From assembly GCA_965603825.1 (NCBI GenBank), contig CBFDEM010000045.1, positions 1 through 64,000 on the forward strand: DNA of 64,000 bases, read 5' to 3'. Of this stretch, positions 9,346-63,620 are shown one piece after another. This stretch comes from Blepharisma stoltei ATCC 30299 (Eukaryota > Protista > Ciliophora). The translations under genes were made by a program, and so were the position numbers. A model generated the notes under the pieces. The model saw only the letters and a list, made by a program, of their open reading frames with translations. It had not been told where the DNA came from and did no database searches. The first letter of the stretch is position 1. The number at the start of each line of letters is the position of its first letter.

Positions 9346-12300
9346 TTATCTTGCTGAAATAAGCGAGCTACTTACGTCGACGTTTGACGAATTCTCAATG
9401 CAGCTATATTTTGCTGAGGCCTCTATGCCTGCCTCTAATGGTGATTTTACTGAAAGTTGAAATCTGAATAGCTTTGTTATATAGTCTCCTTTTATACTGC
9501 TTTCTAAAAATGATGGTAAATATTTTGCCTGATATATAATCCCTATAACCCAAATCGTAATCCATCCGATTCCAATCAGATATTGCGCCAATAGATTATT
9601 TATATTAGCAAAACCACAGCAAATTCAAAGCCAGATACAAGAAAATAAAAAAGCAATAAACCACAGTGATGCTCTTTGATAGTTATAGGACTGTGAAAAT
9701 AAGGAAACGAAAATAAAAATAGCTATGAAGTTTATACAGCTGACATGAAAAATCTCCTCTGAGGACTGATAAACAATCGTTTTAAGTGAGATCAGCAGAA
9801 TTTGAAAAATAGTCTTATAAAATGCATGAATAGGCTGCTGCCAAAAGTGAAAAGTTGAGTAGACTGTCTCATCATCTCATATAAGCCTATAGTATAGAAA
9901 ACATGGCAAATAAACAAAGAGGGCAACTGACGAAATTGCTACATAGTATACATGCTTATCTTGCCAACAAAATACATAGCAGTCCTGACTGTGAAAGCTC
10001 TCTTTAAAGCTGTCTTCAGTGCTATCTGTACACTGAAATGTCAGGAATAAAAATAGAGTGATGGGAGTAAATAAAAATTCTCCTATAATAGGAAATAAGC
10101 ACTTTCAGATTTCACTTGATATTGTTGCTGATATAATTTTGGAATCACTGCCTACGCTAAATATCCTTTGCAAGCTCAAAAAGAATCAAACAAATGATAA
10201 AGCAGCTGCCATTTCAATTTCTTCCCAAATATTCCAATCTCAGTCTCTAAAATCAAGAATTGCTAGCTTGGCTAACTGTGAAACCTGAGGCAAAATTTCA
10301 GAGAAACCAGGGCCTAAAGCCATATATTGCAGAGATTCTACTGCAATGAGGGTATCGGATAAAATGTCAAGCCAGTTCTCTTTTTCTTTAGCTTCAAGCA
10401 TTGGGAATTGCTTTGATAAGATCGACTCATAATTTTTATATAAATAATATATGGTAATGCCAAAAGGAATGATAGCTATAAATAGCATTATTAAATAACC
10501 ATATATAAAAGATTGGGTTTCACTTGCTTTAAAGGGGCAAGATCAGCCAGTTCTAATCATGTCACTTGGGATCTTGCCATCTACTAGCCATGATAAGCTT
10601 TCTAAAGTTTGATAAAGAACTGGTAAGCTTGGAGTATAGATCCCACATAATACCGTTTCTCACTTATTTTCCTTTTGAATTAAATTATAAACCCCAACTG
10701 CGATAGTTGAAGCGTCATTTCCATAAGAAGCAACCTTGATATTCCCTGAGCATCCAGTAAATTTGACTTTTCTGGCCCATTCTTCAATCGTTTGTGTATT
10801 CAAACTGATTCCATTTGTTATCATTTGATCAAAAGTATAAGCTCCTAAATAGACTGCATCATAGAATAAGCACATATAATCATCTGCATAGCCATGAGCA
10901 GCCATAAATTTCTCTCTTATTTTTTTTCCAAATTCTTTGTAATATGACAAAAATGTAACATGGACCAAACCTTCCATGATTTCGCTGCGCTTTTGGTATA
11001 AATCTTTGTTTATAAATTTTGGGTCTAGCTCTGAGCTGTTTAGCGAAATGTCTCCAATAATGAGGTAGATGTCTCCTTTTCTCATACCTAAGTCATAAAA
11101 GTTCTCAATGACAGAGTAGAGTTCTGGCTCTGCCACTTCGAGAACCACAAATCTGGTTTGCAATTGGACGATTTCTTTGACTATTTCTAAGCCAGTTCCA
11201 TCATATCCAATAGGGATAATTTGCTTGTGATTCAGGATTTCAATATTATAGTATTTTGCATGCATGATAAACTGTTTTTTGAAGTCTATAGTCCATGAGC
11301 TATTTGAATGCAAGAACGAGCATTTAGAAATCCCAAGAAAGCTGAGAAATAAAGCAACTGTGGCACCATTGTATATGCTAGGATACGTGAGCCTGAAATA
11401 TTGAGGGTAGTAGACAATATCACTTAGGGCGGAAGAGGATTGAACTCCTAAAATTGGAGTCGAAATATTTAGGTCTTTGAATACTCAGAATGTCCCTTGG
11501 GCCATTTCTGAAGTAGCTGGGGCAATGTGAAAATAGCCTATATCATAAGAATGTGCTTTAAAACAATTATAGGCGTAATCATAATCAAAGAAAGAAGCCC
11601 CACAGTCTGAAATATTAAATGCTGATATCTCAAAATTACTCAAAATATTTGACTCCGTGTTAATTTCATTTACTGCGAAAACAGATCCAAACTGCGATAA
11701 AGCATTTTCAAAATATAAAGAACCATCAGGATTAGAAATCCCTCCCTCAAAACTCATTGGGAGCTTTATTCTAGAATTGTCAGGGATTGCTGATGAATCC
11801 CCAGGGAAAGTGACATCAGCTCAAATATCAATTTTATTATCAATCACTGATCCAACAAGATTTGTTTGATTATTTTTAATATTGAACACTCACAGCATAG
11901 TTGTCCAAATAATGTTTCTTTTTTCATAATTATTAAAGGTGTATCCTGAATATACCCCTTGAGTCCTATCAATATTTGCCATCATTAGAAAAAACGAGGT
12001 AGCTATACTCACAAGACGGCCTGCATGATCTTCCATGCTATGAGCGATGTAATTATTAAGCTCACTAATTAGAATTGATCCATCCAAATAAGCAGTTCAA
12101 GCGCTTTGATGGAGAAAAATGAAGGCATAACCTTTTGTATGCATATCAGCCTCAACAATGGCTCTCTGTATTAGGAGAGTAGTCTCACAGTTAGTTGCGA
12201 TGATAATAACTCTAACTCCTAAAGGCTTAACTTGTTTAGATATAATAAGATATATTGTTTCGTAAGGGGTGGAATTAGGAATCGTAGTTTGAAAAGCAAT

Positions 12301-12792
12301 ATCGACATCTGCATTGCTTTGAAAATCATATGATATTAATTCAGGGCTGTAAATAGCAGTTGCTCTTTTTCAGTCAAAGTATTTAATTAAAGATACTATA
12401 GAGTCTCTAAATTGTGAAAATGAGTACGCAGAAAAATATATATTGTCTCTAAGACTCTTCGGATCATAGCCATATACAAGCTGGATAAATCCTCCGATAA
12501 TAGCATATCTGTTTAATTGTGCAGTGATGCTTAATGAAAAAGTGCAATCGTAGAGAAGTTCAAAGTCTATAGATGATCCAAGATTTTCAATATCTTGTGC
12601 CTGCTCTATTTCAATGGGAATATAAAAAATATCATAATTGGAATTGCATTTGGGAAAATTAAGGTTTGGGCAATTATAAGAGGATAGAATGAATTCTTTA
12701 AACTTGCTTGGGGTGAATCGGCTGTAAAGAATAGGAACATTGATAAATTGGCTTGAAGCAAGTGCAAGCCACAGAATAAGTGAATTTATCAT
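9346..12792 (-). CDS. Tandem Venus-flytrap (ANF-receptor-like) multi-pass membrane receptor, copy 1, 1148 aa
   Basis: All minus-strand track fragments between 9346 and 12792 share one frame and are broken only by TGA. Signal peptide MINSLILWLALASSQ; VFT motifs 'AVNEINTESNILSNFEI', 'LSDIVYYPQYFRL', 'FYDAVY', 'VKFTGCSGNI'; TM region; TAA stop. Confidence 0.85.
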
Positions 12793-12948
12793 GAGAAATT
12801 ATAACTCCATTCAAAGACTTTTTTTTATAGTTAACTCACAAATGACTGTTTATAAAAATTTAGAGGAAATAATTTGAAAAAATAAAATAGAAAAAGTTGC
12901 ATATAAAACTTAAGATGGCTCAAAAATAATTATAAGACAAAATAACTA

Positions 12949-15900
12949 CTATACACAAGATTGATCACTGCTTTTCATATCTTCTTTTTGTATTGGTTCT
13001 ACGTATTGATATTTAACTGATTTATCGATTCCAGCTTCAGAAGGTGTTCTCCTAGACAATTGGAATCTGAACAACCTGAGGATGTCTTGGCCTTTCGGGC
13101 GAATTAAAAGTGAAGGTAAATATTTTTTCTGAAACCATATTCCAGCTGCTAAAGAGAAAACTCATCCAACCCCTAAAAGACATTCCGCAAGAATTAAATT
13201 CAGCTGAGAGATTTCACGGCAAGTTCAAAATCAGAGGCAATCAGTCAAGCAAATAGAGTATCACATTGATGCTCGATGATAATTATAGGGCCGCTTTATA
13301 AACCATGAAGCAAGCGTAAATAATAAGATTATGGTAAAGCAACATGCATTATAGCTTATTTGAGACGCAGGAAATAGAATGACCCTTAATACAATCAAGA
13401 GAATCTGCCAAAAACTCTTCATGACTGAGTGAAATGGCTGCTCTCTGATATGAAACACTAGATCTTCAGTTTCATCTTGCCACATAGGCCGAGAGTATAA
13501 ACTAGCTGGTAAATAGGATAGAAGAACTATGGAAGAGATGATCACGTATTTCATATGCATCCCTTGCCAGCAAAATACAGTGCAGTCTTGATCATGATAG
13601 CTGTCCTTGAACTCATTCCCAATACTATTCGTGCACTGGAAAGTAATAAGCAAAAAATTGACGATTGGTATAAACAAAAGGTCTCCAATAATCGGCAAAC
13701 AATATTTTCCAAGCTCGTCCATTGCAGTAAGTAATGAAATCTTTCACTTCTCTCCAATATGAAAAACTCTCTGAATAAGTAAAATGATTCAAAAGGCTGC
13801 GATGATATCAATTAGCTTTATTTGATCTCATATAGATCAATCACTATCCTTGGTCGGGCCCATGATATCAAGCATGGCAAACTTAGTGAATTTAGAAAAC
13901 TCAGACATAAATCCAGTGAAATCTGGCCCTATTGCCATATACTGCAGGCTTTCTATTATCATTTCAATATAAATTCATATGTCAATAAGAGTCTCTTCTT
14001 GAGCTTTTTCAAGCATAGGGAATTTTCTTGTAAATATGGAACCAGAATACTTTACTGCCAAAAAGACTCCCATTAGTAGAGGAATTGCTCCGATCCCTGT
14101 CAATAGCAAATATCCATATAAAAATGACTTGCTTTGATTCGATCTAAATGGACACTCGTGATCTTCCCCAATAATAGCATTAGGCAGAACTCCTTCATTT
14201 TCGTAGAACCATGAAATAGAATGAACTTGCTCATAAAATTTCGCACCATCAGGATTGTAGATCCCACATAGTCTCATTGTTCATGTAGAATTTACTTGCA
14301 CTAGGTTGTAAATACCAAATCTTATTGTTGATCTGTCATTTCCATACTTATTGATCTGAATTTTCCCGGTACATCCTGTAAATTTTATTCATCGTATTGC
14401 CTTTGCAATTGTAGTGCTGTTTAAATTGATTCCTTGCGAAATTAAGGAACCCAAAGCACGAGCTCCTAAATAAGTTGCATCGTAATATAAGCACATTATA
14501 TCAGGCGCAAGCCCATAGGTGCTCATGAAATCTTTTTTAAGCTTTTCTCCAATAGAGCCGTAATAAGTTAGGACCCCAAAATACAGCAGCCCATCCATCA
14601 ATTCTTTACGCTTTTTATATGCCTCATGTCCAATCTCAGCTTTGTTCAGATTGGCAACGTCAATTACTAAATCTCCAATAAATAAATATAAGTCTCCTTT
14701 TCTAACTCCTGCATCATAGAAAGTTTCAATCACACTAAGCACATCAGGGGAAGTGACTTCCATTACAAGGTATCTTGACTTCAAATATATGATTTCTTCA
14801 ATAAATGATGTATCAGTCCCATTATATCCACTAGGAACTAGTCTATTTTCGTTTAATATTTCAATGCGGTATTGCGCACACTGCTTTTCGAACTGTGTTT
14901 TAAAATCAGTACCTCAAGTAGAGTTTGTGCATAAAAGAGAGACTTTTTTAATTCCGAATGAGTTGAGTATTATAGCAGCAATTAGTCCAGTGATTATATT
15001 TGAATATGAAACTCGAGCATACTGAGGATAATAAGCAGAATCACTTAAGGATGCTGTTGTCTGAATTCCTAAAACAGGGATTGATAAGTTAAAACTGCGG
15101 AAAATTTGGATTGTGCCTTGAGCTATTACAGTCTCTAAGCCAGATAAATGAAAATAGCCAATATCTTTTAAGTGTGCTTTGAGACAGTCATAGCAATAGT
15201 CATATTCGAAGATAGATGCACCACAATCTGATATATTAAAAATTGAGAGCTCAAAGTTAGCCAATATATCAGACTTATCATTGATATCATATGCAGCATA
15301 CATAGCTCCAGTTAATGCTAATGCATTTTCTACATAATACGTTCCATCTGGATTTGATGCTCCTCCATAAGCACTAATAGAAATATTTATTTTTTCATTA
15401 TCAGGAGCAGTGATTGAATTTCCTGGAAAAATAAAAGGCGAGCTAACTTCTATGATATTTCCGTTAATAGACCCGCAAAGAACATTACTATGTTTTTGGA
15501 TATTATACAGATATGATGTAGAGTTTATTTCGGCAGCAGTCTTCATGTAATCATTGAGTATATAAGATGAAAAAGATCCATGAATTTGGCTGCTACTCAT
15601 GAAAAATACCAAATAAAGTGAAAATGAGTCTACGAGATACTCGAGATAATCTTCTTCACTTTTAGGGATGTATTCATCATCTGCAATCAAAATTGATCCT
15701 TCTAAATATGCTGCTCATACACTATGGTGGAGAAAAATAAATGCGTAATCTGCTTTATTCATGTCTGTTTCAACAATTGCTTTTTGAATCAGCACTGCTG
15801 TTTCTTGATTTGTAGCGATGACGATGACCTTGGTCCCAAGAGGCTTGATTTGATGTGCGAAAATAAGACGAATCGCCTCATAAGAAATTAATGATGGGAC

Positions 15901-16407
15901 AATCGATTGTAAGGCAATCTCAATTTCATCATTTACCCGAAAATCCATACTTTGGAATTCCTGACCTAAAATGACCACCACTTTCTGTCATCCATGCGAG
16001 TCAATAAATGATAAAGCTGTGTCTCTTAAAGAAATGTAAGAAGACTCAGAATAATAAACAAAATCATGGGTGGTGTTTGGGCTGTAGCCATACACGAGAT
16101 TAACAAATTCATATGACCTCGCATAATCGCTAATAATAGACGTCACGCTAAGTGAAAAAGTGCCATCAAAAGAGAAAGAAAAGTCAAGCTCTGATATCAA
16201 GATTTCAATGTCAAGAGGGCTATTAACTTCATATAAAACATAATATACGCCTGAATTTTTGCATTTCATAGAGTTGATTTTGGGGCAATTATAGCTTCTT
16301 GAGAATGATTCTACTACTGAGTTTGGAGTGAATTTACTGTACAGTATAGGAATAGTAATATATTGGCTTGCCACAAAATAGAATAAGGCAGAAATGAGAA
16401 ATTTCAT
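12949..16407 (-). CDS. Tandem Venus-flytrap multi-pass membrane receptor, copy 2, 1152 aa
   Basis: One frame from ATG 16407 to TAG 12951-12949 (followed by a second TAG), with at least 14 in-frame TGA at Trp-compatible positions. Collinear with copies 3 and 4. Confidence 0.88.
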
Positions 16408-16454
16408 GCAAAATTTATTTTTAAGACAATAAAAAAATTTAAATGCTATTTTAA

Positions 16455-17102: not shown

Positions 17103-20100
17103 CTACTCTAAATAAGAATAATCGCTGCTTTTCAGATCTTCTTTTTGAACTCCTTCTACATATTTGTATTTTACTGAATTATCAATTCCAGCTTGAGATG
17201 GAGTTCTCCGGGATAATTGAAATTTAAACAATTTGTGAATATCTTGGCCTTTTGGGCGAACTAAAAGTGATGGGAGATATTTCTTCTGGAGACAAATTCC
17301 AGCTACCACAGAGAATACTCAGCCAAACGCTAAAAGACACTGAGCAGCAGTTATATCTAGCTGAGAAAAGATTTGGCATATTCAAAGTCAGAGGCAGTCT
17401 GTCAAGCAAATCAAGTATCACATTGATGCACGATGATAATTATAAGGCTTTTTAATAAATCATAAGCCTGCAAATAAGGATATTATTACAAAACAGCATA
17501 TGTTGTAGCTTATTTCTGATGCCGGCAATAAAATAATATGCAATTCAATCAAGAGAATCTGTCAAAAACTCTTTATAACTGAGTGAAATGGCTGCTCTCT
17601 AATATGAAATACTAAATCTTCAGTTTCATCTTTTCACATAGGGCGAAAGTATAAGCTAGCTGGCAAATATAATAATAGAATGATAGAAGAACTGACCGCA
17701 TATTTAAGATGCGTCTCTCGCCAACAAAAAACATTGCAGTCTTGATTATGATAGCTGTCCTTAAGCTCATCCCCAATGCTGTTTGTGCACTGGAAAGTCA
17801 TAAGCAAAAAATTAACAAAAGGTATAAATAAAAGGTCTCCAATGGTAGGCAGGCAGTATTTTTCTAGCTCATCTATTGCAGAAATTGATAAAATCTTACA
17901 CTTCTCTCGAATATTGAAAATTCTTTGGATTAGTAAAATTACCCATATCGCGGCTATTATATATATAAGCAATATCTGATCTCAAAAATCTTTTGTTGAG
18001 CCTCTGATATCAAAAATAGAAAACTTAATAAATTCGGAGAAATCAGGCAACAGCCCAGTAAAATCTGGTCCGATTGCTATATACTGTAAGCCTTCTATTA
18101 TCATCGAGATATAAATTCATGTATCGAGAAGGGTTTCTTCTTGTTCTGAGTCAAGCATAGGAAAATCTCTCATAAATATAAAATTAAAATACTTTATTGC
18201 TAAAAAGGTTCCAAAAATTAGTGGAAATGTTCCAATTCCAGCCAACAGCAAATAGCCATATAGAAACGATTTGCTTTCTCTCTGCTTGAATGGACAGTTA
18301 AAATCTGCCCCAACAATATCACTTGGCAAAATTCCATTATTTTCATAGAACCATGAAAAAGAATAAATAATTTGATATATAGCAACATTATAAGGGTCAT
18401 AAATCCCACATAATCTCATTGTTCATGAAGAATTTACTTGGACTAAGTTATAAATGCCAAATACTATGGAGGATCTATCATTTCCATATTTATCGATTTG
18501 GACCTTCCCGGAACACCCTGTGAACTTGATATTTCTTATTGTTTTTGAAATCATTGAACTATTTAGATTAATTCCTAATGAAATTAAGGTATCCAAAGCA
18601 TTAGCTCCTAAATAAGTCGCGTCATAATATAAGCACATTATGTCTGAAGCAGCTCCATAGGTTTGAAATAGCTTGGTCTTCAGTCTTTCTCCAACAGAGC
18701 CATAATAGGTAAGGACTTCGAAATATAACAGTCCATTCATTAGTTCTTTTCGCTTTATATATACCTCTGTTCCAATTTCAGTCTCATTTAGATGTGAAAA
18801 ATCAATTACTAAATCTGCAAGATATAAATATAGATCTCCTTTTCTAACTCCTACATCATAAAAAGCTTCAATTACACTGAGATAGTCAGGAGAGATAACT
18901 TCCATCACAAGATACCTTGACTTCACGTCTATGATTTCTTGGATAAATGATTTATCAATTCCGTTGTAGCCAAGAGGAACCAGCCTTTTTAGGTTTAGAA
19001 TTTTCATGTTGAATTGTTTGCTCTGGCTTTCGAACTGCTCTTTGAAATCTGTGCCTCATGTAGCATTTGTGCATAAAAGTGAGACTTTTGTAATGCCTAA
19101 GGAGTATAGCATCCAAGCAATATATGACCCAGAAACTGTATTAGGATAGGAAACTCGTGCGTACTGAGGGTAATAGGTTAGATTACTCATAGAAGCTGCT
19201 GTTTGGATACCTAAAACAGGGGTTGATAAATTTAAGCTTCGAAAAATTTCTATTGTACCTTGAGTTATTACAGTCTTCAAATCAGTCAGATGAAAATAGC
19301 CAATATTTTCTGACTGGGCTTTCAAACAGTCATAGCAATAGTCATACTCGAAGATAGATGCTCCACAATTTGAAATATTCAGGATCGAAAGCTCAAAATT
19401 CGATAGTATTTCATGTTTTTCATTAATATCATATACAGCATATATAGCTCCCGTTAATGATAATGCATTTTCTACATAATAAGTGCCATCTGGATTTGAC
19501 GCTCCTCCATAAGCACTAATAGGGATTTTTATTTTTGTATTATCTGGAGCAGTCATTGAATTTCCAGGAAAAATAAATGGCAAATTCACTTGCACGCTGT
19601 TTCCGTTCATATACCCACAAAGAACTTTTTTACTGTTTTTAATGTTGTACAGATAAGACTTAGAGTTTTTCTTTACAACATTATTCATATAATTATTGAT
19701 TGCACAGCCTGAAAAAGCTCCTTGAATTTTGTTAACATACATCAAAGATTTTATTAAAAGGGAAAAGCTATCTATAAGATATTCCAAATAGTTTTCTTCA
19801 CTGCTAGCGACATAATTATCGTCTGAGATTAATATTGATCCTTCTAAATATGCAGTCCAAACGCTATGGTTTATAAATATAAAAGCATAGTCAGCTTTAT
19901 TCATTTCCGCCTCAACAATTGCTCTTTGCACTAGAATTGTTGTGTTTTCATTTGTAGCAATAATAATGATTTTGACCCCAAGTGGTTTGATTTGTTTCGC
20001 AAAAATCAGGAGGATTGCGTCATAAGAAATTAAATTCGGGACTATGCATTGTAAGGATATGTATATTTCATTATTTACTTGAAAATCCATACCTTGGAAT

Positions 20101-20552
20101 TCCTGGCCTAAAAGAGCAACAGCTTTCTGTCATCCGCTGGACTTAATAAACGATAAGGCGGTGTCTCTGATAGAAATATAAGAAGGTTCAGAGTAGTGAA
20201 CAAAATTTTGGCTTTTTTCTGGATTGTAACCATACACAAGATGAACGAATTCATATGATTTCGCATAATCGCTAATAAGAGATGCCATACTTAGCGAAAA
20301 TGTACCATCAAAAGCAAAGGCAAAGTCTAAAGCCGCGATCAATGCTTCTATATCAGCATGACTATTTACTTCATATAAAACATAATATACACCTGATTCT
20401 GCAGTACATTTCTGAGAGCTGATTTCAAGGCAATTATAATTTTTTGAAAATGCGTTTCTTATTAGTTCTGGGGTAAATTTACTATACAGGATTGGAACAG
20501 TAGTGTATTGGCTTGCCACTAAACAAAATAAAACAGACATCAGATAAGTCAT
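17103..20552 (-). CDS. Tandem Venus-flytrap multi-pass membrane receptor, copy 3, 1149 aa
   Basis: One frame from ATG 20552 to TAG 17105-17103, interrupted only by TGA. Same motifs as copies 2 and 4. Confidence 0.88.
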
Positions 20553-21445: not shown

Positions 21446-21524
21446 CGATTATTATATGATTTCTTCTAAATCTGCATAGAGATATATAATAAAAAAAATT
21501 AAAATTACAAAAATGATAAACAGA

Positions 21525-24500
21525 CTATTCTAAATAAGAGTGGTCGCTACTTTTCAGATCTTCTTTGTGAATTCCTTCCACATATTTATATTTCACCGAT
21601 TTATCGATACCAGCTTGTGAGGGAGTTCTTCGGGATAATTCAAATCTAAATAACTTACGAATGTCTTGGCCTTTTGGACGAACTAGAAGAGATGGCAGAT
21701 ATTTTTTCTGAAATCAAATTCCAACTGCCACGAAAAATACTCATCCACCTCCTAAAAGACACTGAGCAAGAATTATATTTAGCTGAGAAAAGAGATTGCA
21801 AATCCAAAGTCAGAGGCAATTAGTCAGGCAGATGGAATATCACATTGACGCTCGGTGATAATTATAAGGCTTTTTAATAAACGAGCCAAATACAAATAAG
21901 GATATTATGACAAAGCAGCATATGTTATAGCTTAATTCTGATTCAGGTAAAAGAACAATGCGCAAAACAATTAGAAGCAACTGCCAAAAACTCTTTATAA
22001 CTGAGTGAAATGGCTGTTCTCTGAAATGAAACACGAGATCTTCAGTTTCGTCTTGCCACATAGGACGAAAGTACAAGCTAGTTGGCAAATATAGCAATAA
22101 AATGATAGAAGAAACGATCACATATTCTAGATGATTCCCTTGTCAGCAGAAAACAGAACAGTCTTGGTCATGATAGCTGTCCTTAAACTCATCCCCAATG
22201 CTGTGAGTACATTGAAAAGTCATAAGCAGAAAATTCACAATTGGTATAAATAAAAGGTCTCCAATAATTGGCAAACAATATTTTCCTAGCTCATCCATTG
22301 CTGTAAGCAATAAAATCTTGCACTTCTCTTCAACATGTAAAAGTCTTTGGACAAGTAAAATAATTCAAAAAACAGCTATAATATCCATAAGCTCGATCTG
22401 ATCCCAAATATTTCAATGGCTTTCTTTTGTTGAGCCTCTGATATCAAGCATCGAAAACTTAGTTAAATTAGAAAGTTCAAGTAAGAACCCATTGAAGTCT
22501 GGCCCGATCGCTATATATTGCACACCTTCTATTATCATAGCAATATAAATTCATGTATCGATAAGTGTTTCTTCTTGCACTGAGTCAAGCATAGGAAATT
22601 CTCTGGTAAATATATAATTAAAATACTTTATTCCCAAAAAGGCTCCTAAAAGAAGTGGAAGTGTCCCAATTCCAGCCAACAGCAAATAGCCATCCAGAAA
22701 TGGCTTGCTTTCGCTCGGCTTGAACGGGCATTCAAGATCTGCTCCAACAATATCGCTTGGTAGGACTCCTTTATTTTCATCGAACCACGACATAGAGTGA
22801 ACAGTTTGATAAAAATTCACAGCATCCGGGTCATAAATGCCACACAGCCTCATTGTTCATGTAGAATTTATTTGAACTAAATTATAGATGCCAAATACTA
22901 CGGTTGATCTGTCATTTGCATTTTTATCGATCTGGATTTTCCCAGTGCACCCTGTGAACTTGATATTTCTTATTGCTTTAGAAATCATTGTGCTGTTAAG
23001 ATTGATTCCTAATGAAATTAAAGTATCCAACCCATGAGCTCCTAGATAAGCAGCATCATAATATAAGCACATTATATCAGGAGCCATCCCATAGGTGCTC
23101 AGTAACTCAGTTTTCAGTCTTTCTCCAACGGAGCCATAATAAGTTAGGCTTCCAAAATATAACAGTCCATCCATTAGTTCTTTTCGCTTTAAAAATGCCT
23201 TATGTCCAACCTCAGTCTCATTTAGGTATCCAACATCAATAACTAAGTCTGCAAGAAATAAATACAGATCTCCTTTTCTGACTCCTGCGTCGTAAAAAGC
23301 TTCAATCACATACAGATCGTCAGGAGCGGTGACTTCCATTACGAGATACCTTGACTTCACGTCTATGATTTCTTGGATAAATGATTTATCAGTTCCGTTG
23401 TATCCATAAGGAACTAGCCTTTTTTCGTTTAAAATTTCAATGTTATATTGCTTACTCTGGCTTTCGAACTGCTCTTTGAAATCTGTGCCTCACGTAGCAT
23501 TTGTGCATAAAAGCGAAACTTTTCTAATACCAAAAGAGTATAAAATGATGGCGATAATTGACCCAGAAATTGTGTTAGGATAGGAAACTCGTGCGTATTG
23601 GGGATAATAGATTTGATTGCTCATAGAAGCTGTTGTCTGGATTCCTATTACAGGAGTTGATAAGTTTAAGCTGCGAAAAATTTCTATTGTACCTTGCGTT
23701 ATTATGGTTTGCAAGCCGGTTAGATGAAAATAGCCAATATTTTCTAAGTGTGATTGCAAACAGTCATAACAGTATTTATACTCGAAGATTGATGCCCCAC
23801 AATCTGAAATATTAAAAATTGAGAGCTCAAAATTGGATAATATTTCTGATTTACTGTTAATGTCATATACAGCATGCATAGCTCCAGTTAAAGCTAATGC
23901 ATTTTCAGTATAGTAAGTGCCATCTGGATTTGACACTCCTCCATATGCACTAATAGAAATTGTTATTTTTGTGTTATCCGGAGCAGCTATGGAGCCTCCA
24001 GGGAAAATAAAAGGTGAGTCCACTTGCACCTCATTACCATTCATATACCCACAAATAACTTTTTGGCTGTTTTGAATGTTATACAAATAGGACTTGGAGT
24101 ATCCTTCAATAACGGTTTTCATATAATTATTGACTGTGTAGGCTGAATAAGCTCCTTGAATTTCACTAGCTTCCATCAAATATCTTATAAAATTAGAAAA
24201 GTTGTCAATAAGATACTCCAGATAATCTTCTTCACTGCTAGCGACATAATCATCGTCTGAGATTAATATTGATCCTTCTAGATATGCAGCCCAGATACTA
24301 TGATTTATGAAGATAAATGCATAGTCTGCTTTATTCATGTCTGCCTCAATAATTGCTTTTTGCACTAAAACTGTCGTGTCCTCGCTTGCGGCAATAATGA
24401 TAATCCTTACCCCAAGCGGCTTGATTTGCTTCGCCAAAATAAGGAGAATTGCATCGTAAGAAATTAATGTTGGGACTATGACTTGGAAAGCTATATCAAT

Positions 24501-24986
24501 TTCATTATTTACTTGAAAATCCATGCCTTGGAATTCCTGACCTAAAAGAACAACAGCTTTTTGCCATCCACGCGATTTAATAAATGATAAAGCGGTGTCT
24601 CTGATAGAAACATAAGAAGGCTCAGAGTAGTAAACAAAATCTTGAATAGTTTCTGGGTCATAACTATACACAAAATGCACAAATTCATATGATTTCGCAT
24701 AATCGCTAATAAGAGAAGTAATACTTAGAGAAAAAGTGCCATCAAAAACGAAAGTAAAGTCCAATGCTGATATCAAAGATTCTATGTCAAAATAGCTATT
24801 AACTTCATATAAAACATAATATACGTTTGAATCTGCAGCACATTTCTGAGATTTGATTTCAAGACAACTATAATTTTTTGAAAAAGCATTCCTTATTGAT
24901 TCTGGGGTGAACTTACTGTATAAAATAGGAATAATAGTATGTTGGCTTGCCGTTAAAAAAATCAAAACAGATATCAGAAAATTCAT
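21525..24986 (-). CDS. Tandem Venus-flytrap multi-pass membrane receptor, copy 4, 1153 aa
   Basis: One frame from ATG 24986 to TAG 21527-21525. It has TGG at 'GWQK' where copies 2 and 3 have TGA. Confidence 0.88.
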
Positions 24987-25589
24987 GCAGCTAATAATAA
25001 TTATTATTCCAACTTTGAGCGAGAAAACCTATTGAGAAATATTTTTATACATAATTATCATTTATATTATCAAGCTAGTTATATTACATTTTATAAGTTT
25101 CAAAATTGTTTTTTGACCAAAATTAATTAAATTAAAGTTTTTGCAACTTTTTTTTGCCTCCTTACGCTTTCGGATAGTGTGGCCCATAAAAGGAGGGAAT
25201 TCTAGCTCTATTTTAGAAGAATTGTCTGCTTTGAGGATAACGCTGGCATTGAGACCCAAGGGTCCCAACCATTCGAAAGACTTTTCCTCATTCGCCATCA
25301 CATGAGGAGCAGTTACACTAGGAAAAAGAAGCACATCCTATAGAGCTGTAAGGGAAAAGGCTGTAGCTCAATCCGCCTGGATAAGTAATACTTGGTCATT
25401 GAGTCGCCACAAGCTCCTTCCCAAAGACTAGCCATACCATGCAGCCGCTCAAAGCAAGTTAATTGCTAAAGTTAACAAGGTTTTTATAAAACAATTCTAA
25501 CATAAAAAAGGTTTTTCGCTCTCCAAGAGGAATTAGTATAAATAAAATTAATAATAGACGATAGAAAGATATCAAAAATCTATTTGATC

Positions 25590-26420: not shown

Positions 26421-26994
26421 GAGAGCCACTAAGATAGACTGTTGAAGATTCTTCTCATTTATTGAGAAAATAAAGAGCCAGAAGCAAACTTCTGTGAAAT
26501 GGTGCTGCATGGCCTTCAATTTAAAAATTAATGGATCGCGGATAATGCAAATTCTCAACACTAATGGTTTAATTTTATTAGCTTCAAGAATTATTAAGCT
26601 TAAATATTTGAAGTTTCAGAAAAATAATTTTAATTGCTGAATTTAAATAAATAAAGATATAATAGCATATAAATAAAAAATCTAAACTTAATTTCGATAC
26701 AAATTCATGAAATTAAATGGCAATCTTTTATTTAAATATTATTTTGTAAATAGTAGTGAGTTTTCTCAAAGGTTTGATGCCGTAAAAGAAATAAAGTTAG
26801 AAGGCTATCATAAATAAGCTCATGTCTGAATTATATAATTATTTAGAAAATTATTAATTAAATTTAAATTATAGGTTTGAATTACAGAATAGGAATAACA
26901 ATGTTTGGCTTGCCATAAAATAAATAGAGCTAAATTTAGAATATTCATATTATAGCAATTATTTTAAAAAATAAAAAAATCTTCAAATTAAAAT

Positions 26995-29900
26995 TTATCG
27001 ACTTGAAGAATAAGAGTTAATTTCTATATCAACATCTTCAATGCCAGCCAAATTGTAACCAGTGTGCTTAACTATTCCTGCTTCTACTGGAGACTTGTTA
27101 GATAATTGGAACCTAAATAATTTGAGAATGTCTTGGCCTTTAGGCCCTACTAGCAGAGATGGCAAATAGAGCTGCTGATATATAAGACCAATAGAGAGTA
27201 AAATTGCTCAGCCAAATCCAAGCACTAATTGAGCAGCTAACTTGCTAATTTTAGCTATACAGCAACAAATTCATAATCATAAACTGAGCGAAATAAATAC
27301 TACATATCACAAAGATGCTCGGTGATAATTATAAGGAAGCCTAATCATAGAAAAAACAATTATAAAGATTAGCACAGCAATCCCGCAGCCAATAAACATA
27401 TATTCTGAAGCAGGGTAGACTGCAGTGTAAAGTATCATTAAAATTAGCTGGCAAAAACTCTTATTTACTGTATGTATAGGCTGTTCTCGAAAATTAAATA
27501 AGGCTTGCTCAAGATGATCTTGCCAAGTTGGTCGATGATATATGCTAGCAGGCAAATATAAAAAAATCGCGACTGAAGACAAACCCACAAAAATTGTATG
27601 TTTACCCTGCCAACAAGAAGTCCAGCAGTCTTGATGATGAAAACTGTCTTGGAAGCCATCTCCAGTGCTGCTTATGCACTGAAAAGTAAGCCACAAGAAC
27701 AAGTTCATAGGCAAAAACAAGGCATCTCCAATATAAGGCAGAAAATACTCGCTCATTTCGTTTATGATTCTAAGGAAAAATATCTTTGATGTCTTTCCCC
27801 ACTCAAAAGTCCTCAGCATTAGTAAGATAAATCAAATTAGCGATATGAACTCAATCATTCCTATTTGGTTTCAAATTGTTCAATGGGCGTTTTTATTCCA
27901 TCCTCGGACATCAAGCATAGAGATCCTTGTAAGCACTGACAATTTTGGGAAAAAGGTTGTAAAATCTGGACCAACTGCCATGTACTGCAAGGACTCTACT
28001 ACCATGATGAGATAAGCACAAGCGTCCAAAATCGTTTCTTTTTTAACTGAAATCAGCAACGGAAATTCGCGTCTAATCAAAAAATCATAGCAGATAGCTA
28101 CAAAAGCGATGAGAAACAGCAGAGGAGCAATTTCTATAGTAGCTATAATTATATATCCAAATATAAAAGGAGAAGCAGCATCTTCTTTAAAAGGACAGTC
28201 AAGATCAGCACCAATTATGTCGCTGGGGACTTTTCCATCACTTTTAACTCATGAAATCGTAGAATCAAGCTTCAGCATGACTTCAAGATTCGGGTTATAA
28301 ATCCCACGATATTTCATAGTCCAAGTAGAATTTATTTGCAGTAAGTTATAAATCCCAAGCCTAATTGTCAGTCTATCATTTCCATATCTGCTTATTTTGA
28401 CTAAGCCTGAGCAGCCATCAAAAGTGACACTCCTTGATAGGTCTTCTATGGTTGAGCTGTTCAAGTTTGTGCCTTGGCTTAACAAAGCATCAATTGTATG
28501 GGCTCCGAGATAGACGGCATCGTAAAACAGACACATGTAGTCGTAGGCAAGCCCATACTTTTCTAGTAAAGATGCCTTAACTCTTTTCCCTATATCTCCA
28601 TAAAATGCTAAAAAACTGATATAGATGAGACCGTCCATGATCTCTATTCTCTTTGCATAAGATTCAGCTCCGATCTGTTTTTCGTCCATGTCATAGATAC
28701 TAACTGTGCCATCTCCCACTATAAGAAAGATATCTCCTTTCCTCATTCCCAAGTCATAAAGTGCTTCTATTACATAAAACACATCTGGCTGGTTCAGCTC
28801 AAGCACCACATATCTGCTTTTTGTGTCAATAATTTCTTGGATTATTGCTTTATCTGCTCCTACGTATCCAGGATTAAGCGCCCGATTTTTATTTAAAATC
28901 TCGATCCCATAAGATTTAGCTTGGCTTACAAATTGGACATTATAATCGTTTCCTCAAGTTGAGTTTGAATACAGCAGAGAACATTTTGAAACTCCTAATA
29001 CGGACAGCAATAAAGCTGCAGCAGATCCTGTATATGAATTTGGAAAGGAAACCCTGGCGTACTGAGGATAGTAATTAAGATTGCTCATTGCGCTTGATGT
29101 TTGTGTCCCAAAAAGGGGCGTTGAAATATTGGCTGCTTGGAAAACTTGGACAGTCCCTTTAGCGATAGAAGTTTGCAGTCCTGGGATATGAAAATATCCT
29201 AAGTCTTCTGTGTGATTTTTAAAGCAGTTATAAGAAAAATTATAATCGAAATAATAGCTCCCGCAGTCAGAAATGTTATAAGCCGCCATATCAAAATTCT
29301 CCAAAAGCCCGTCCATAGAATTAAGTTCGTTTACAGCAAGAACAGACCCCATTTGATTAATAGCATTTCTGGGATACACGAAGCCATTTGAGTTCGAAAC
29401 GCCTCCATTGATGCTGAAAGGAATTTTAAACTTCTCATTGTCTGGAGCTTCTCAGCTTCCTCCTGGAAATAATAAAGGTGTATTTATATTAACCACATTT
29501 TTCGAAATAGTTCCCACCTTTGGTCTCGTTCCGTCCTGCAGCACATTATAAATCGAAAAATCAGCAGACCATGTGAGACCAATTTCTACGTATTTATTGA
29601 AATAATAAGCTGAATAGGACCCTTGATATTGATTATCACTCGTCATAGATACTAATAAAGAAGTAGTCCATTGGATAATTGTATTCAAATAATCAATTAT
29701 CCCAGTATTAGAAATAGACTTCCCTTCAACTAAAATTGCTCCTTCTAGGTTTGCAGCCCAAGCACTCTGCTGAACAAAAATGTAGGCATAGCCGCGTTTA
29801 TACATTTCAGCCTCAATTAATGCTTTTTGTATAGAAACGGAAACGCTTTCATTTGTCATTATCAGCATCAGCTTTACGCCTAAAGGTTTTATTTCTTTTG

Positions 29901-30459
29901 TGATCATCAGCAAGATCGATTCATACGATGCAGCTGCTGACACGACATACTGCTGCACGATTTTTATGTCCTTGCTGGCTGTAAAGTTAACTCCAATGAA
30001 TTCTGTACTCAAAACTGCGACGGCTTTTTGCATTCCGTAATACTTCGCAAGTGAAATAACTGCTTCTCTATACTTATCAAAAGGAAAATCTGAATAATAA
30101 ATATTTTTTGTGGGATTATCAGGGGAGTACGCATAGACAAATTGAATAAAACCGTAAAATCGTGCGTATTCGCTGATTAGAGTGGTCATGCTTAATGAGT
30201 AAGTTCCGTCGAGAACAAACGTAAAGTCAGAATCTTCAAAAAAATTTTGAAAATCAGCTAGATCGTTCACCTCATATAGAATATAAAATACAGGAGAGTT
30301 AGGCTGGCATCCAGGGGCATTCGCATAAGGACAATTATAGTAAGTTTTAAAAAAAGCAACTATCTCTTTAGGGGTAAATTGACTGTACATTATTGGGATC
30401 GTGACGAATTGGCTTGCGACTTTAAAAAAAACACATATCAAGATGAGGAGAATGGCCAT
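26995..30459 (-). CDS. Tandem Venus-flytrap multi-pass membrane receptor, copy 5, 1154 aa (more diverged subfamily)
   Basis: One frame from ATG 30459 to TAA 26997-26995 with TGA=Trp. Motifs 'AVNELNSMDGLLENFDM', 'MSNLNYYPQYARVSFPN', 'QDCWTSCWQGKH', 'PYNYHRASLW'. Confidence 0.88.
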
Positions 30460-31610
30460 TTGTAATCTTTAATTTTTTACGCCTGAGATTAATGAATGAT
30501 TTATTAATAATCAGATATATAATACAATTAAGCTAGTGTTTGAAGAGACGCGTTTTTGAGTTCTTAGAAAATTTACATTAGAAATGAGGCTGGCTTAAGA
30601 ATTTTGATGAAGAGATATTCAATATAGTTATATAGAAAACATAAAAAAATTGTGTTGTAATCTCTTGCCGATTTGAGCACGCCACGTAAAGAATTTAATT
30701 TTATGTGGATATTTCAAATATAGAGACTTGGCATGTAAAATTCTATTTCGCATGTCTTAATTCTTTCATAAAAATGATAATAGATATCGCATCATTGCAC
30801 GAGTGCTGGAGATGTTGCTATTTAGCTATTGCTTAAGAATGCTCATCGAGCTAATCCGAAAATTATAAATATGAAGTGCTAATAGTCTATGGTTTAAAAA
30901 TGAATTCTAGCTGTGTCAAAAATTCTTAAAATGCCAGCTCGGAAAGCACTGCGGATGTATTCTTAATTAAATATCAGAAAAAGAGATTTAAGCAAGAAAA
31001 AATATTAAGAAACCATAATAATTGATCTTAATGATTTGAGATTTTTATTAATGTAAGTGTAGTAAAATTACACCTTCTTTCTTATGAATCGAGAGTATAA
31101 TAATTTTTTGATGAGAATTTCAAGTAAATCTTTGCTAATTCGAGGAATAAATTTTATATTTCTCCTCTTCGTGTGATGGATTTCTTTGAGGGAACTGATT
31201 AAGTGGCATTTCTCTTTTATTAATACTTCAATCTCAAGAATTAGCACCAGGGCACTTGTATTTTTTAAATTGTTAAATCGCTAAATGATTCAACGAAATA
31301 TTAAGTGTGAGAAATTATCATTCATATTTCTCTAAGATTACAGCTAAGGCTATTTAATTATTTATTAATAAAATTGACATATGGAAATTTTTAAGATTTC
31401 GCAGTTTTGAATTTTTTTGTATTTAAAAATTATTAATCGAAAATATCAATAAATTATTTAATTTAAGACTATAAATCAAATTGAAACAATTTATCAATTT
31501 TTAATTATTTATAAAGTTTGCAGGAATAAACAATTAGGAGAGAATTTTATATCATATAAACACATGAGATAAGCTATAATAATAGCATTGATTTATTAAA
31601 GACTAAATTA

Positions 31611-34600: not shown

Positions 34601-35036
34601 CAGTCAATAAAACGGTAACGACAAGAGAAGTGCCTAGATAGAAATTGGAAGGATCTTCTGGGCTCATACCATAGGCTACATAACATAATCCTGCACCTGC
34701 CCACAAGAGGAGAGAAAAAAGGCCAGTCAGTTGCTTTATAAATTTGCAGTACCAAGGCAGCCCTTTCTTTTCAGAGAGCTTATTTTCTCCAAAGACCTTT
34801 AATTTGGCACGGGCTGATGACTCATTAAGGCCAGAATCATAGTCTGTTTCAAGCTTTCCAGCAAGTTCTCTCAATGGAATTTTATGCTCGACCATTTCTC
34901 TGAAAGCTTCAGAATTTTTGATGGCGGCGTCAGTTTTGGAGCTTGAGGTCTCTTTTGAAAGTCTTACTTCTGGAGCTGTTTGACTTAAAAGCTTCTCCTT
35001 ATAAGGTGATGTGCTTGGTCTGAATGCTTTAGACAT
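31611..35036 (-). CDS. ATP1A: P2C-type (Na+/K+-ATPase-like) P-type ATPase alpha subunit, 1141 aa, one TGA=Trp
   Basis: Two track ORFs in one frame joined at TGA 32945-32943. Motifs KVDNSSLTGESEPQ, IGIIVANVPEGLL, CSDKTGTLT, MKGAPE, MVTGD, FARTSPAQK, TGDGVNDSPAIKKADIG, SNIPEI, IDLGTDMVPAVSLAYE, and a C-terminal ...NTFY. Confidence 0.95.
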
Positions 35037-60292: not shown

Positions 60293-63200
60293 TTATCTAA
60301 TAAATTTACTATTTTCGGGATTTTCTTCATCCTTTTCGTTTTTATCACTTTTAATATAAGCATATTCAGCATGCCTGCCAATTCCAGCATCTTCAATCCT
60401 GGTTGATGACAATTGAAATCGAAACAAATTAAAAATATTTTTGTCTTTTTCTGATATCAAAAGGCATGGAAGATACTTTTTTTGGAAAAATATGCCAAAT
60501 AATCCGAGTATTGCTCATCCTGCTAGCAGAATTATAAGCGCAGCAGCTTTACTTCATTTTGATATACCACAGCAAATTCAAAATAAGAGGCTGCACGTCA
60601 AAAAAATACTATATCACATTGAAGCCCTATCATAATTAAATGGCTTTTTGTATGTTGAAATCATAGCATATGCAAAAAACAGGGCAATGCATAGCCCTAT
60701 ATAAGCATATTCAGAAGCTGGGTAAACAACTGTATATAGAATAATATCAATGTGTTTATAGCTTCACCTCACGGAGGGGGGGGGGTCAGGAGGATAAAAC
60801 GACATAGTAGATATGCTTATCTTTCCAACAAAATGTTGAACAGTCTTGGTTATGAAAACTTTCGGTAAAACTATCTCCAATGCTACTAGTGCATTGAAAA
60901 CTTTGAAATAAATTCAAGCAGACAGGTAAAAATAGTGAATCGCCAAGAAAAGGCAATAAATACATATTAAAGTCATTTATTCCTATGGTTATACAATTCT
61001 TAGAATTTTCTCCAATTTTATATTTTTTTCAAAAAATCAGAAAAAATCACGCAAAAGAAATCCCTTCAAAAAATAGTAATTGATTTCAGAATGTAAAATG
61101 GCCATTACTCAAGCCAGTTATATCAAGAACCACAAATTTAGTTAAATCCGACAGCTGAGGGAAAAAACTATTTGTCTCATCTCCTGTATACATATATTGT
61201 AAACACTCAATAAGCACAATAATATATGAAAAAGAGTCAAGAAAATTTTCTTTTTCAACATCCATAAGCTTTTGTATAGAAAAATTAAAAACAAAGTCCG
61301 AAAATTTAATAACAAAGCCAGTCCCAATTATTATTGGGATAACTTCAATTGCTATCAAAATAAAGTAGCCTTTTATGAAAGATTGAACTTGCCTTTCCTT
61401 GAAAGGGCATTTTTGGTCTTCTCCTATAATATCGCTAGGGATATGACCTTCAGTAGACTGCCAAAAAGATTGTTTAATTTGAAGCACAATCAGTTGGCTT
61501 GGGTCATAGAGTCCACAAAGGCTCATTTTTCAGGTCGAGTTAGCTTGAATTAAATTATAAATCCCTAAAACTGTTGTCAGTCTGTCATTCCCATCTTGGG
61601 CGATTTGGACTACTCCTGAGCAGCCTGTGAATTTTACATCTCTCATAGCTTTTTGAGTTTTTGAGCTTTCTAAGTTTATTCCTCGATTAATTAAAGAGTT
61701 TATAGCATAAATTCCAAGATATGCCGCATCATAAAATAGGCACATATTATCATATGCAAATCCAAAACGAGATAAAAAATTATTTTTGATATTTAATCCT
61801 ATTTGATTCTGAAATGCTAAAGAACTGACATAGATGAGCCCATTCATGATTTCTTTTCGTTTTTTATATAAATCTGCATTAACCCTCTTTTCATCCAAAT
61901 CGGATATGCTTAGCATTCCATCTCCTGCAATAAGAAAAATATCAGTCTCTCTCATTCCCAAATCATAAAATGCTTCAATTACATACAAAATATCTGGCTG
62001 CTGAATTTCTAAAACGATATATCTGCTTTTAAGATCAATAATTTCCTGAATCATTATATTGTTTGTGCCGTTAAATCCTAAAGGAACAACTCTGATTTTA
62101 TTTAAAATTGTTAGGCCATATGAGTTAGTCTGATTGATGAACTGAGAATTGAAATCTCTTCCTCATTGTGAGTCTGAATATAATAGTGAGCACTTAGATA
62201 TTCCAAAGATACTCAAAACTAAGGCTACTGCAGAAGATGTAATTGAATTTGGATAAGAAACTCTTAAATATTGAGGATAATATTTATGAATACTCATTTT
62301 AATTGATGTTTCGGCGCCTAGAACTGGTATCGATACATTTATTGATTGAAAAAAATCGACAGTTTCTTCAGTAATCTTTGTATCTGCTTTTGGTAGATGA
62401 AAATACCCTAAATCTGCTGTATGATTTAAAAAACAGCTATATACTGAATTATTATCAAAATCACAAGTGATATTGTTCATTATAATATGAAAATTTGGCA
62501 ATAAAACTGCTTCACTTTTAATTGTTTCTACTGCAAAACTAGCACCATATTGGTTCACACTATTTTCTCCATTTATACTTATAGGAATTTTAATTTTTTC
62601 GTTATTCGGGGCTTCATAAGTCTTTCCTGGAAACATCAATTTATCATACAGTTGCAACCCTTTTCCATTTATTAGTCCTACTGCTGCCAAACTCCCATCG
62701 CTCTGTATATTTCAAATACTGCATGCAATTGTATCAATAGTAAAAATTTTCTGCACATATTTATTCAATGCATAAGCTGAATACGACCCTTGTATATTAT
62801 TATCTGCAACAATTTGATATAGGAGCAAAGATGTATTATAAATTAATTTTTCAATAAAATCATGAAGTCCAGTGCTATGATAGGATCTTGCCTCAAATAA
62901 AATTGAGCCTTTTAAATAAGCACTTCAGGCTGCTTCCTGCAAATAAATATAAGTATATCCTTCTTTGTCCATATCAGCTTCTACTAAGGCTTGCTGAATT
63001 AAATAAGAAATCGCTGCATTTGTTTGAAAGAAAAGCCATTTAACGCCAAATGGCTTGATTTCTCTTGAAATTAATGAAAAAATGTATTCGTAAGGGACTG
63101 ATTCAGGAATTGTGTATTGGGCTACAATTTCTATTCCTTTGTCATTAGTAAAATCCATCCCAATAAAATCACTTGTAATAATAGCGATTACTTTTGTGAT

Positions 63201-63620
63201 TCCATAGATTTTGGCAAAATTTATTGCAAAATCGCGGTATTGACTAAATGAATAGTCGGTATAGAAAACATAAGGTAAAGAATTTTCTGGTGTATTGCCA
63301 TAAATGAAGTGTATGAACCCATATTCTATTGCGTATTGGCTTACTAATGAAGACATGCTAAGAGACCAAGTTGAGTCATATACAAATAAATAGTCAGAAT
63401 TTGAAAAAGCTTGCTCTATATCTGAAACACCATTGATTTCAATAGCTTGATATTGATAAGGCCTAGATAAGTCGCAGCCTGCTAAATTGTTTAATGAGCA
63501 ATCCAAAGTCTTTACAAAATAGTCAATAATTCAGGTATCAGTGTTTTGACTATATAAAATAGGAATTGTAAAAATCTGACTCTTAACAGAGTATAGGAGC
63601 AGGCAAAAAAAAATAATCAT
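60293..63620 (-). pseudogene. Tandem Venus-flytrap multi-pass receptor, copy 6, disrupted by a ~100-nt deletion and frameshift at about 60755-60790 (pseudogene or assembly error)
   Basis: Open from ATG 63620 (MIIFFCLLLYSVKSQ) with TGA=Trp through 'QDCSTFCWKDKHIYYVVLSS', then a C10 run and TAA at 60758-60756. The homologous 'ILYTVVYPASEY...PFNYDRASMW...LFRFQLS' continues in another frame to TAA 60295-60293. Confidence 0.8.

Follow-up and report, generated by a model that had tools for sequence, protein, structure and literature searches.

The first 64,000 nucleotides of contig C45 of the Blepharisma stoltei ATCC 30299 assembly (C45:1-64000, here called the window) carry a series of related genes that raise a question: what does a ciliate do with proteins that pair two ligand-binding domains with a membrane bundle of no standard receptor type? 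To answer it, we analyzed the window together with the whole assembly of 41.46 Mb in 64 contigs. We found that five intact genes, R1 to R5, each encode two Venus-flytrap domains (VFT1 and VFT2) of the type I periplasmic-binding-protein (PBP-I) kind, followed by a predicted nine-helix membrane domain and a short tail. By analogy with known sensors, we think it somewhat probable that R1 to R5 are cell-surface receptors of a large, lineage-restricted ciliate family that sense ligands through a bundle resembling the Pfam family TRP (PF06011).

Six related genes lie in the window

As the initial annotation had anticipated, long open reading frames (ORFs) appear in the window only with genetic code 4, in which TGA encodes Trp. 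Six of these ORFs are related, all on the minus strand: R1 to R5 are intact (1148 to 1154 amino acids [aa]; 9346-30459), and R6 is broken. Thus, of the six paralogues of about 1150 aa originally described, five stand, but the sixth is interrupted by a frameshift and a deletion of about 45 aa. Every motif quoted in that description was found in the alignment of the copies. The N-terminal signal peptide it reported appears as a hydrophobic leader, read from a hydropathy scan only. The genes and their parts are as follows.

9346-12792, minus strand: R1, intact, 1148 aa, 12 in-frame TGA codons read as Trp (code-4 ORF and alignment); VFT1 11764-12747, VFT2 10567-11763, nine-helix membrane domain 9481-10566, cytosolic tail 9349-9480
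12949-16407, minus strand: R2, intact, 1152 aa, identical to public protein P0152; VFT1 15385-16362, VFT2 14182-15384, membrane domain 13084-14181, tail 12952-13083
17103-20552, minus strand: R3, intact, 1149 aa, identical to P0156; VFT1 19527-20507, VFT2 18324-19526, membrane domain 17241-18323, tail 17106-17240
21525-24986, minus strand: R4, intact, 1153 aa; VFT1 23961-24941, VFT2 22758-23960, membrane domain 21663-22757, tail 21528-21662
26995-30459, minus strand: R5, intact, 1154 aa, identical to P0001; VFT1 29425-30408, VFT2 28225-29424, membrane domain 27130-28224, tail 26998-27129
60293-63620, minus strand: R6, broken copy; main frame from 63620 to 60789, C-terminal part in another frame at 60296-60742

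Spacers of 0.15 to 2 kb separate R1 to R5. In the alignment, R2, R3, and R4 are mutually 70 to 78% identical, and every other pair is 39 to 48% identical. The public model of R4 (P0149, 999 aa) takes an internal Met as its start and has neither the signal peptide nor the first half of VFT1; the leader and approximately 154 aa that it leaves out lie in the same open frame and are conserved in all paralogues. In public databases, proteins of the family are named only automatically, as "Receptor ligand binding region domain-containing protein."

The main frame of R6 ends after "VVLSS" at 60789, beside a run of 10 G residues (60776-60785; C10 on the coding strand). The copy lacks about 45 residues, from late helix 5 into early helix 6, and its VFT2 has gaps of 11 aa and 4 aa. 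A misassembled homopolymer could account for the shift in frame but leaves the lost residues unexplained. From its sequence, R6 is probably a pseudogene.

The ectodomain consists of two tandem flytraps

VFT2 was readily recognized. In R5 (aa ~346 to 745), it matches ANF_receptor (PF01094) with an E value of 8.6e-25 and 87.9 bits against a cut-off of 25.4, over profile positions 8 to 349 of 353. The match extends over the whole model in R5 (P0001) and seven relatives (E 1e-17 to 3e-37), and a piece of R1 (aa 439 to 712) gives 3.8e-20. A profile of 83 VFT2 sequences matches the solved flytraps of T1R1, mGluR3/5/7/8, CaSR, GABA-B, and AtGLR3.4 (E 4e-19 to 1e-15).

VFT1 of R5 (aa 18 to 345) alone stays under the Pfam cut-off for ANF_receptor, at 15.6 bits. 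However, an 81-sequence VFT1 profile matches the amino-terminal domain (ATD) of GluN1 with an E value of 8.3e-13. AlphaFold models were made of the R5 VFT1 and membrane domain, and the VFT1 model (AF2; predicted local distance difference test [pLDDT] 93.3, predicted template-modeling score [pTM] 0.91) alternates beta strands and alpha helices as a two-lobed clamshell does. In Foldseek, this model finds the NMDA-ATD, GABA-B, and GLR3.4 flytraps (E 3e-14, probability 1.0). Because the VFT1 profile, model, and Foldseek matches add to the Pfam match of VFT2, there are two PBP-I flytraps in tandem in one chain. Two successive flytraps of this PBP-I/LIVBP type had been predicted at the outset, and Pfam, profile, model, and Foldseek agree on them.

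Mean column identity is 22% in VFT1, the most variable part, 35% in VFT2, and 34% in the membrane domain. Within VFT2, the scaffold motifs P, L-S, and Y-P-x-F-x-R are nearly invariant, whereas the two loops aligned to Ser151 and Thr174 of mGluR3, which under this numbering we take to be the ligand-contacting residues, have Ser or Thr in just 39 to 57% of members. Variable cleft loops on a conserved scaffold would be the pattern expected of a ligand-diversified repertoire. The linker from the flytraps to the membrane is a short stretch with a single invariant Cys ("CPF").

The membrane domain is a nine-helix bundle that matches no standard receptor output

Hydropathy gives 8 to 9 segments in the membrane part, and the AlphaFold model of R5 residues 745 to 1125, built on 78 sequences (pLDDT 93.6, pTM 0.90), has nine long helices followed by a short amphipathic helix, in keeping with the 8 to 9 segments first described. 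With the ectodomain outside, the positive-inside rule, read from the sequence, fits every loop. The modeled topology is compatible with an extracellular N terminus, a cytosolic C terminus and tail, and an extracellular Cys-rich loop between helices 4 and 5. This loop has three invariant Cys in the motif F.C..(15)..DC...CW...H. Invariant among the 78 members are C11 (of the "CPF" just before helix 1), D68, C184, C201, and C205, and Q81, P87, F171, P173, D200, W206, H210, and R303 are conserved in at least 90%. The invariance of four extracellular cysteines suggests that two disulfides may tie the flytrap-membrane linker to the helix 4-5 loop. After helix 9 comes a cytosolic tail of about 45 aa with a conserved "QDI..LF.FQLS." No catalytic domain (cyclase or kinase) was found in this tail, which has no Pfam match.

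We then compared the membrane domain with known families. Pfam searches of the 78 membrane domains at E values up to 10 gave no consistent family, and 7tm_3, Lig_chan, and TRP were all without a match. For Lig_chan (PF00060), the ionotropic glutamate receptor (iGluR) pore that splits a PBP-II domain, there was no Pfam match, and both clamshells are PBP-I and N-terminal to the membrane domain. The 7tm_3 (PF00003) and PF06011 models match three and 17 other loci in the same genome, respectively, and none in the flytrap family. The three 7tm_3 loci, which include L008 (G000:C57:710934-711596) and L009 (C3), are ORFs of about 430 aa without a flytrap, and one scores 37.3 bits, above the cut-off. 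NCD3G (PF07562) had no match in pieces of the window or in eight full-length relatives.

These results bear on whether the proteins could be very divergent class C G protein-coupled receptors (GPCRs), with a flytrap on a seven-transmembrane (7TM) core plus two extra helices that signals through heterotrimeric G proteins. By profile, VFT2 is closest to class C flytraps (T1R1, mGluR3). However, 7tm_3 matches 0 of 78 membrane domains although the model finds loci elsewhere in the genome, NCD3G is without a match, no GPCR rises above noise in Foldseek or VIA-align, the model has nine helices, and the homology that was found is to the PF06011-like group described below. We regard a class C GPCR as very improbable. 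On the features tested (no 7tm_3, NCD3G, Lig_chan, or catalytic domain), we rejected assignment to the class C GPCRs, the iGluRs, and the receptor cyclases or kinases. This agrees with the initial annotation, which saw no 7tm_3 signature, iGluR pore, cyclase, or kinase; none has a Pfam match in the family.

Searches for distant relatives by sequence and shape returned little among known structures. A membrane-domain profile had zero matches at E values up to 10 among 177,635 PDB sequences, and the best Foldseek match of the model in the PDB had an E value of 0.19. Across 48,161 chains, VIA-align scored no higher than Z 6.4, for fragments of roughly 100 residues, which is under the stated noise level for helical bundles. 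In a word-indexed protein search, the membrane-domain profile found no proteins of 210 to 667 aa, and the R5 membrane region or a full-length profile retrieved close B. stoltei paralogues alone.

We also asked whether the family could be nutrient transporters or "transceptors," whose flytraps deliver solutes to a nine-helix permease for uptake or uptake-coupled sensing. Bacterial ABC importers of amino acids use LIVBP-type domains as their substrate-binding proteins, and a metagenomic member of the family is automatically named as such a protein. The invariant polar residues D68, Q81, H210, and R303 are embedded in the membrane, the weak top Foldseek rows in the PDB are transporters, and the yeast Flc proteins, which belong to PF06011, were first described as flavin carriers (PMC6727746, PMC9600462). 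However, those Foldseek rows are noise (E at least 0.19, TM-score 0.14 to 0.22), no transporter family matches by sequence or VIA-align, and neither an inverted repeat nor an ATPase module is evident. More than 150 diversified copies also suit sensing better than uptake. Transport is therefore an unlikely, though not negligible, alternative.

The membrane domain appears remotely related to PF06011

The initial annotation had likened the bundle to the TRP family. We found support for this from shape searches. In the ESM-Atlas, one cluster is far ahead of all others (TM-score 0.62 by query over 303 residues, root mean square deviation 4.6 Å), and its members carry Ephrin_rec_like in 72% and PF06011 in 11% of cases. 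In BFVD, a Megaviridae protein (E 4.7e-4, probability 1.0) is alone in reaching an E value below 1e-3; the second in rank, also from Megaviridae, is named "Transient receptor potential ion channel" (E 0.054, probability 0.98). A language-model neighbor search lists a PF06011 cluster weakly (0.82), and the protein-atlas feature leads are all weak, at most 0.86. The best BFVD matches, A0A5J6VI06 and A0A5J6VHI1, come from a Megaviridae environmental sample, and Nucleocytoviricota is among the few taxon records of the best ESM-Atlas cluster. This suggests that the nine-helix domain moves between protists and their giant viruses.

The Blepharisma loci matched by PF06011, whose Pfam cut-off is 28.5 bits, fall into two groups. 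Furin-like Cys repeats mark the first, on C43 and C33, of which one member passes the cut-off. In the second, on C39, C35, and C30, the ectodomains are of the Chlam_PMP, Ephrin_rec_like, and DUF7630 types, and the PF06011 matches fall under the cut-off (E 7e-5). The motifs of this second group are collinear with those of the flytrap family: IKIF.NYLQ corresponds to IE..Q, F.C...(15)...CW...H is found in both, and PY....LN corresponds to KPYNY.R.NLW. With hhalign, the 78-sequence alignment against nine proteins of the second group gave a probability of 93.4% (E 2.5e-7) over 239 collinear columns. A reversed control gave 0.2%, and four of five block-shuffled controls matched nothing but the CW..H block, at 15 to 18%; in the remaining one, the order of some blocks had survived the shuffle, and it gave 70.9% over 78 columns. 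The membrane domain thus appears to be remotely related to, and divergent from, the PF06011-like domain that cysteine-rich surface proteins of protists carry, and we do not file it as a PF06011 member. Of the original comparison, a probable remote homology via the intermediate group and an apparent similarity of fold remain, but no direct match to PF06011.

The two matched groups are themselves multi-gene families of B. stoltei proteins (at least 1,000 aa) with a PF06011-like membrane domain: L012 to L021 (C39, C35, and C30) and L004 to L007, L010, and L011 (C43 and C33). Their ectodomains are cysteine-rich, Chlam_PMP, or Ephrin_rec_like, and both families are apparently uncharacterized too.

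The family is large, tandemly arrayed, and under purifying selection

Rather than the six members first proposed, the genome holds at least 150 places that match the R5 membrane piece (210 candidates) and at least 114 that match the VFT1 piece. Copies lie mostly in tandem arrays of 3 to 25 genes with a spacing of about 4.3 kb. Some 24 genes that share at least 35% identity form a close subfamily, located on C45 (9 to 107 kb), C58 (10 to 17 kb), C34 (46 to 62 and 382 to 385 kb), and C18 (846 to 862 kb).

The family had also been called subtelomeric. Among 142 mapped copies, 42 are less than 50 kb from a contig end (20.8 expected) and 77 are less than 110 kb from one (43.4 expected), counts in which the copies of an array are not independent and many arrays are internal. 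The label captures a roughly twofold enrichment near contig ends, but about 45% of copies are more than 110 kb from any end. It is also of limited meaning because Blepharisma adds telomeres at thousands of internal sites (PMC9942806).

To assess the range of the family, we searched R4 residues 15 to 512 with phmmer against 1.84 billion representative proteins. There were 143 proteins at E values up to 1e-3, most of them 1,100 to 1,190 aa and aligned from the N terminus. No class C, iGluR, or natriuretic receptor of ordinary type reached 1e-3 in this search. In a sample of 30 matches, the 17 with a named source were all B. stoltei; the others were MMETSP transcripts, or metagenome or Logan contigs without a taxon. 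On an activated-sludge contig, ciliary and kinase genes flank a family member, and a GROS21 metagenome scaffold has three members in tandem. Because of these MMETSP and metagenome members, the family is present in other ciliate-like eukaryotes.

The ratio of nonsynonymous to synonymous substitution rates (dN/dS) among R2, R3, and R4 is 0.12 to 0.23 across both flytraps and the membrane domain (0.15 to 0.23 in VFT1, 0.12 to 0.19 in the membrane domain) and 0.06 to 0.11 in the tail. By this sequence measure, the family is under purifying selection, VFT1 included. The first flytrap, which had been called degenerate, is divergent but is not decaying, its dN/dS being similar to that of the other domains.

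These values also speak to a further possibility, that the products are non-signaling surface proteins for adhesion or for self, mate, or prey recognition, whose flytraps bind protein or glycan and whose nine helices serve only for anchoring or trafficking. In its favor, the mating-type proteins of ciliates are surface proteins that cross the membrane several times, VFT1 diverges strongly (mean column identity 22%), and in other Blepharisma families the homologous membrane domain carries quite different cysteine-rich or beta-helix ectodomains, as would a generic carrier. However, the membrane domain and the tail are constrained like the ectodomain or more, and invariant polar membrane residues would be needless in a passive anchor. 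We consider a role of this kind unlikely, to about the same degree as transport.

R5 appears to be expressed. Contigs from four runs of one 2022 study span approximately 26962 to 30530 with no joints, and the flanking intergenic DNA is bare. We read these contigs as transcripts because DNA would not stop at gene edges, and R5 is accordingly read as transcribed and intronless with short untranslated regions. Full-length MMETSP transcripts of the family exist. In the R4-R5 spacer, a contig of about 340 nt (25137-25483) is present in four of four runs and in one of them runs on into 255 nt without a match here; a short ORF (25065-25298, minus strand) lies in the same spacer. The spacer contig may be a small transcribed gene or exon.

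A ligand-sensing role is the favored explanation

Ciliates swim to or from chemicals by changes in membrane potential, and their receptors are essentially unidentified. An ionotropic sensor would fit this way of responding. We infer from all characterized PBP-I sensors that a ligand would be bound in the flytrap clefts. In the mechanism we propose, a small ligand, for example an amino-acid-like food or environmental cue, would close VFT2 and possibly VFT1. The clamshell movement would reach the nine-helix bundle by way of the linker with its Cys and the Cys loop outside the cell. The bundle would then most likely alter its permeability to cations (Ca2+), and this change would shift membrane potential and ciliary beating. 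With tandem duplication and variable cleft loops, the copies could form a set of sensors that differ in specificity, as animal chemoreceptor families do. For the ionotropic output, the analogy is with Schizosaccharomyces pombe Pkd2, which when reconstituted passes Ca2+ on membrane stretch (PMC9727806).

A bolder form of this proposal is that the family is a new class of ligand-gated cation channel, in which tandem flytraps gate a nine-helix PF06011-type pore and the 150-plus genes make up the main chemoreceptor repertoire of Blepharisma and related ciliates. Judged on the same analogies, this is possible but doubtful.

Several points weigh against a receptor that works through a PF06011-like bundle. 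None of the 78 membrane domains matches PF06011 directly. The comparison with the C43 group, the one that passes the PF06011 cut-off, was insignificant in hhalign (1.2 to 1.4%), so the link to PF06011 runs through the intermediate group, and the two Blepharisma groups gave only 49.5% against each other. There is no PF06011 structure in the PDB for comparison, the best VIA-align Z being the 6.4 given above. Channel activity is established for a few fungal PF06011 members alone, and their gating is mechanical rather than by ligand. Finally, the RNA nature of the four runs that cover R5 was inferred from contig boundaries, and their label as RNA is a guess.

A more specific proposal is that the window genes are the receptors for gamone 2 (blepharismone). 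Flytraps bind amino-acid-like ligands, and gamone 2 is a tryptophan derivative; ATCC 30299 is of mating type 1, the type that must sense it (PMC9942806). However, 150 or more paralogues leave a small prior for any given copy, and we found no paper linking the family and gamone. For the window genes specifically, this identity is highly improbable.

The family joins the flytrap, the best-understood eukaryotic small-molecule sensor, to a domain of which only fungal Ca2+-permeable relatives have been studied. By analogy, its members are strong candidates for the chemical sensors of these ciliates. If the flytraps do gate the membrane domain, the family would be an ionotropic chemoreceptor class that evolved independently of animal iGluR/ionotropic receptors (IRs) and of class C receptors. 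It would amount to a ciliate ionotropic taste or smell and would show how the little-understood Flc/Pkd2 domain can be gated. It would also offer a tractable entry to the PF06011 fold, which so far has no solved structure, and concrete Blepharisma candidates for sensing food, toxins, and perhaps pheromones.

Other genes and the telomere end of the window

The initial annotation had treated 9346-63620 as one family. The six copies do lie there, but so do two unrelated genes, a P-type ATPase and an ORF of 8,016 codons. Features of other kinds in the window are as follows.

2215-3030, plus strand: ORF of 272 aa with the helix-turn-helix domain of the TFIIF beta subunit (E 1.4e-19), first gene after the telomere
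31614-35042, minus strand: P-type cation ATPase with a single in-frame TGA (Cation_ATPase_N, E1-E2_ATPase, Cation_ATPase, Hydrolase, and Cation_ATPase_C); inside 9346-63620 and unrelated to the flytrap family
35763-59810, plus strand: single ORF of 8,016 codons (code 4); inside 9346-63620 and unrelated to the flytrap family

About 220 copies of CCCTAACA, with occasional variants, fill positions 1 to 1765 and mark the contig end; CCCTAACA is the Blepharisma telomere repeat (PMC9942806). The first gene past it begins about 450 bp further in.

The 8,016-codon ORF has an N-terminal hydrophobic leader, a C-terminal hydrophobic tail, and 24.5% Thr plus Ser, with no further transmembrane-like segment. 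Pfam gave no match at E values up to 1e-3 in the 6,228 aa scanned, and BLAST at 1e-5 found no internal repeats. Its sequence suggests a giant, beta-rich protein that is secreted or anchored at the surface.

Comparison with known systems

The architecture had been suggested to be possibly undescribed, and our literature searches bear this out: those on Blepharisma ANF_receptor or gamone receptors, ciliate flytraps, and tandem flytraps found no description of the family. The B. stoltei genome paper makes no mention of receptors (PMC9942806). A GPCR survey of 27 ciliates, Blepharisma not among them, reported no family C (PMC9960496), and a recent GPCR survey treats ciliates through 7TM models only.

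Among known systems, the fungal Flc/Pkd2 proteins (S. pombe Pkd2, Saccharomyces cerevisiae Flc1-3, and Aspergillus nidulans TrpR) have a like layout of signal peptide, extracellular binding domain, multi-helix membrane domain, and cytosolic tail (PMC6727746). Their membrane domain appears to be remotely homologous to that of the flytrap family via the intermediate group, and the fold appears alike. However, their ectodomain is an ML-like TRP_N domain rather than two flytraps, and the flytrap family does not have their C-terminal coiled coil. The Cys-rich helix 4-5 loop (F.C...CW..H), another difference from Flc/Pkd2, is shared with the protist cysteine-rich multi-pass proteins (Ephrin_rec_like/Chlam_PMP/DUF7630). 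These have a homologous membrane domain, but their ectodomain is made of cysteine-rich repeats or a beta-helix instead of flytraps.

Class C GPCRs (mGluR, CaSR, T1R, and GABA-B) have an LIVBP-type flytrap sensor, as in VFT2, and the V2R and OlfC chemoreceptors among them have likewise expanded in tandem arrays. The flytrap family differs from them in having two flytraps per chain, neither NCD3G nor 7tm_3, and nine helices of another fold. The iGluRs and plant GLRs also place two extracellular clamshells per chain over a membrane domain, and the nearest flytraps to VFT1 are the amino-terminal domain of NMDA GluN1 and AtGLR3.4. The proposed gating of a cation path by clamshell closure would follow iGluR logic. 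However, the second clamshell is PBP-I in the flytrap family and a PBP-II domain split by the pore in iGluRs, and the flytrap family is without Lig_chan and has a membrane domain that is wholly C-terminal.

Tandem flytraps, extracellular or periplasmic, are also found in the trypanosomatid receptor-type adenylate cyclases, BvgS/EvgS, and CdgH (PMC6027212, PMC5573083, PMC5431781). Their outputs are a single-pass helix with a cyclase, histidine kinase, or diguanylate cyclase, whereas the flytrap family has a nine-helix bundle and a short tail with no enzymatic domain. Flytrap-coupled receptors are already known as a kind; for two PBP-I flytraps on a PF06011-like domain, our literature searches found no description.

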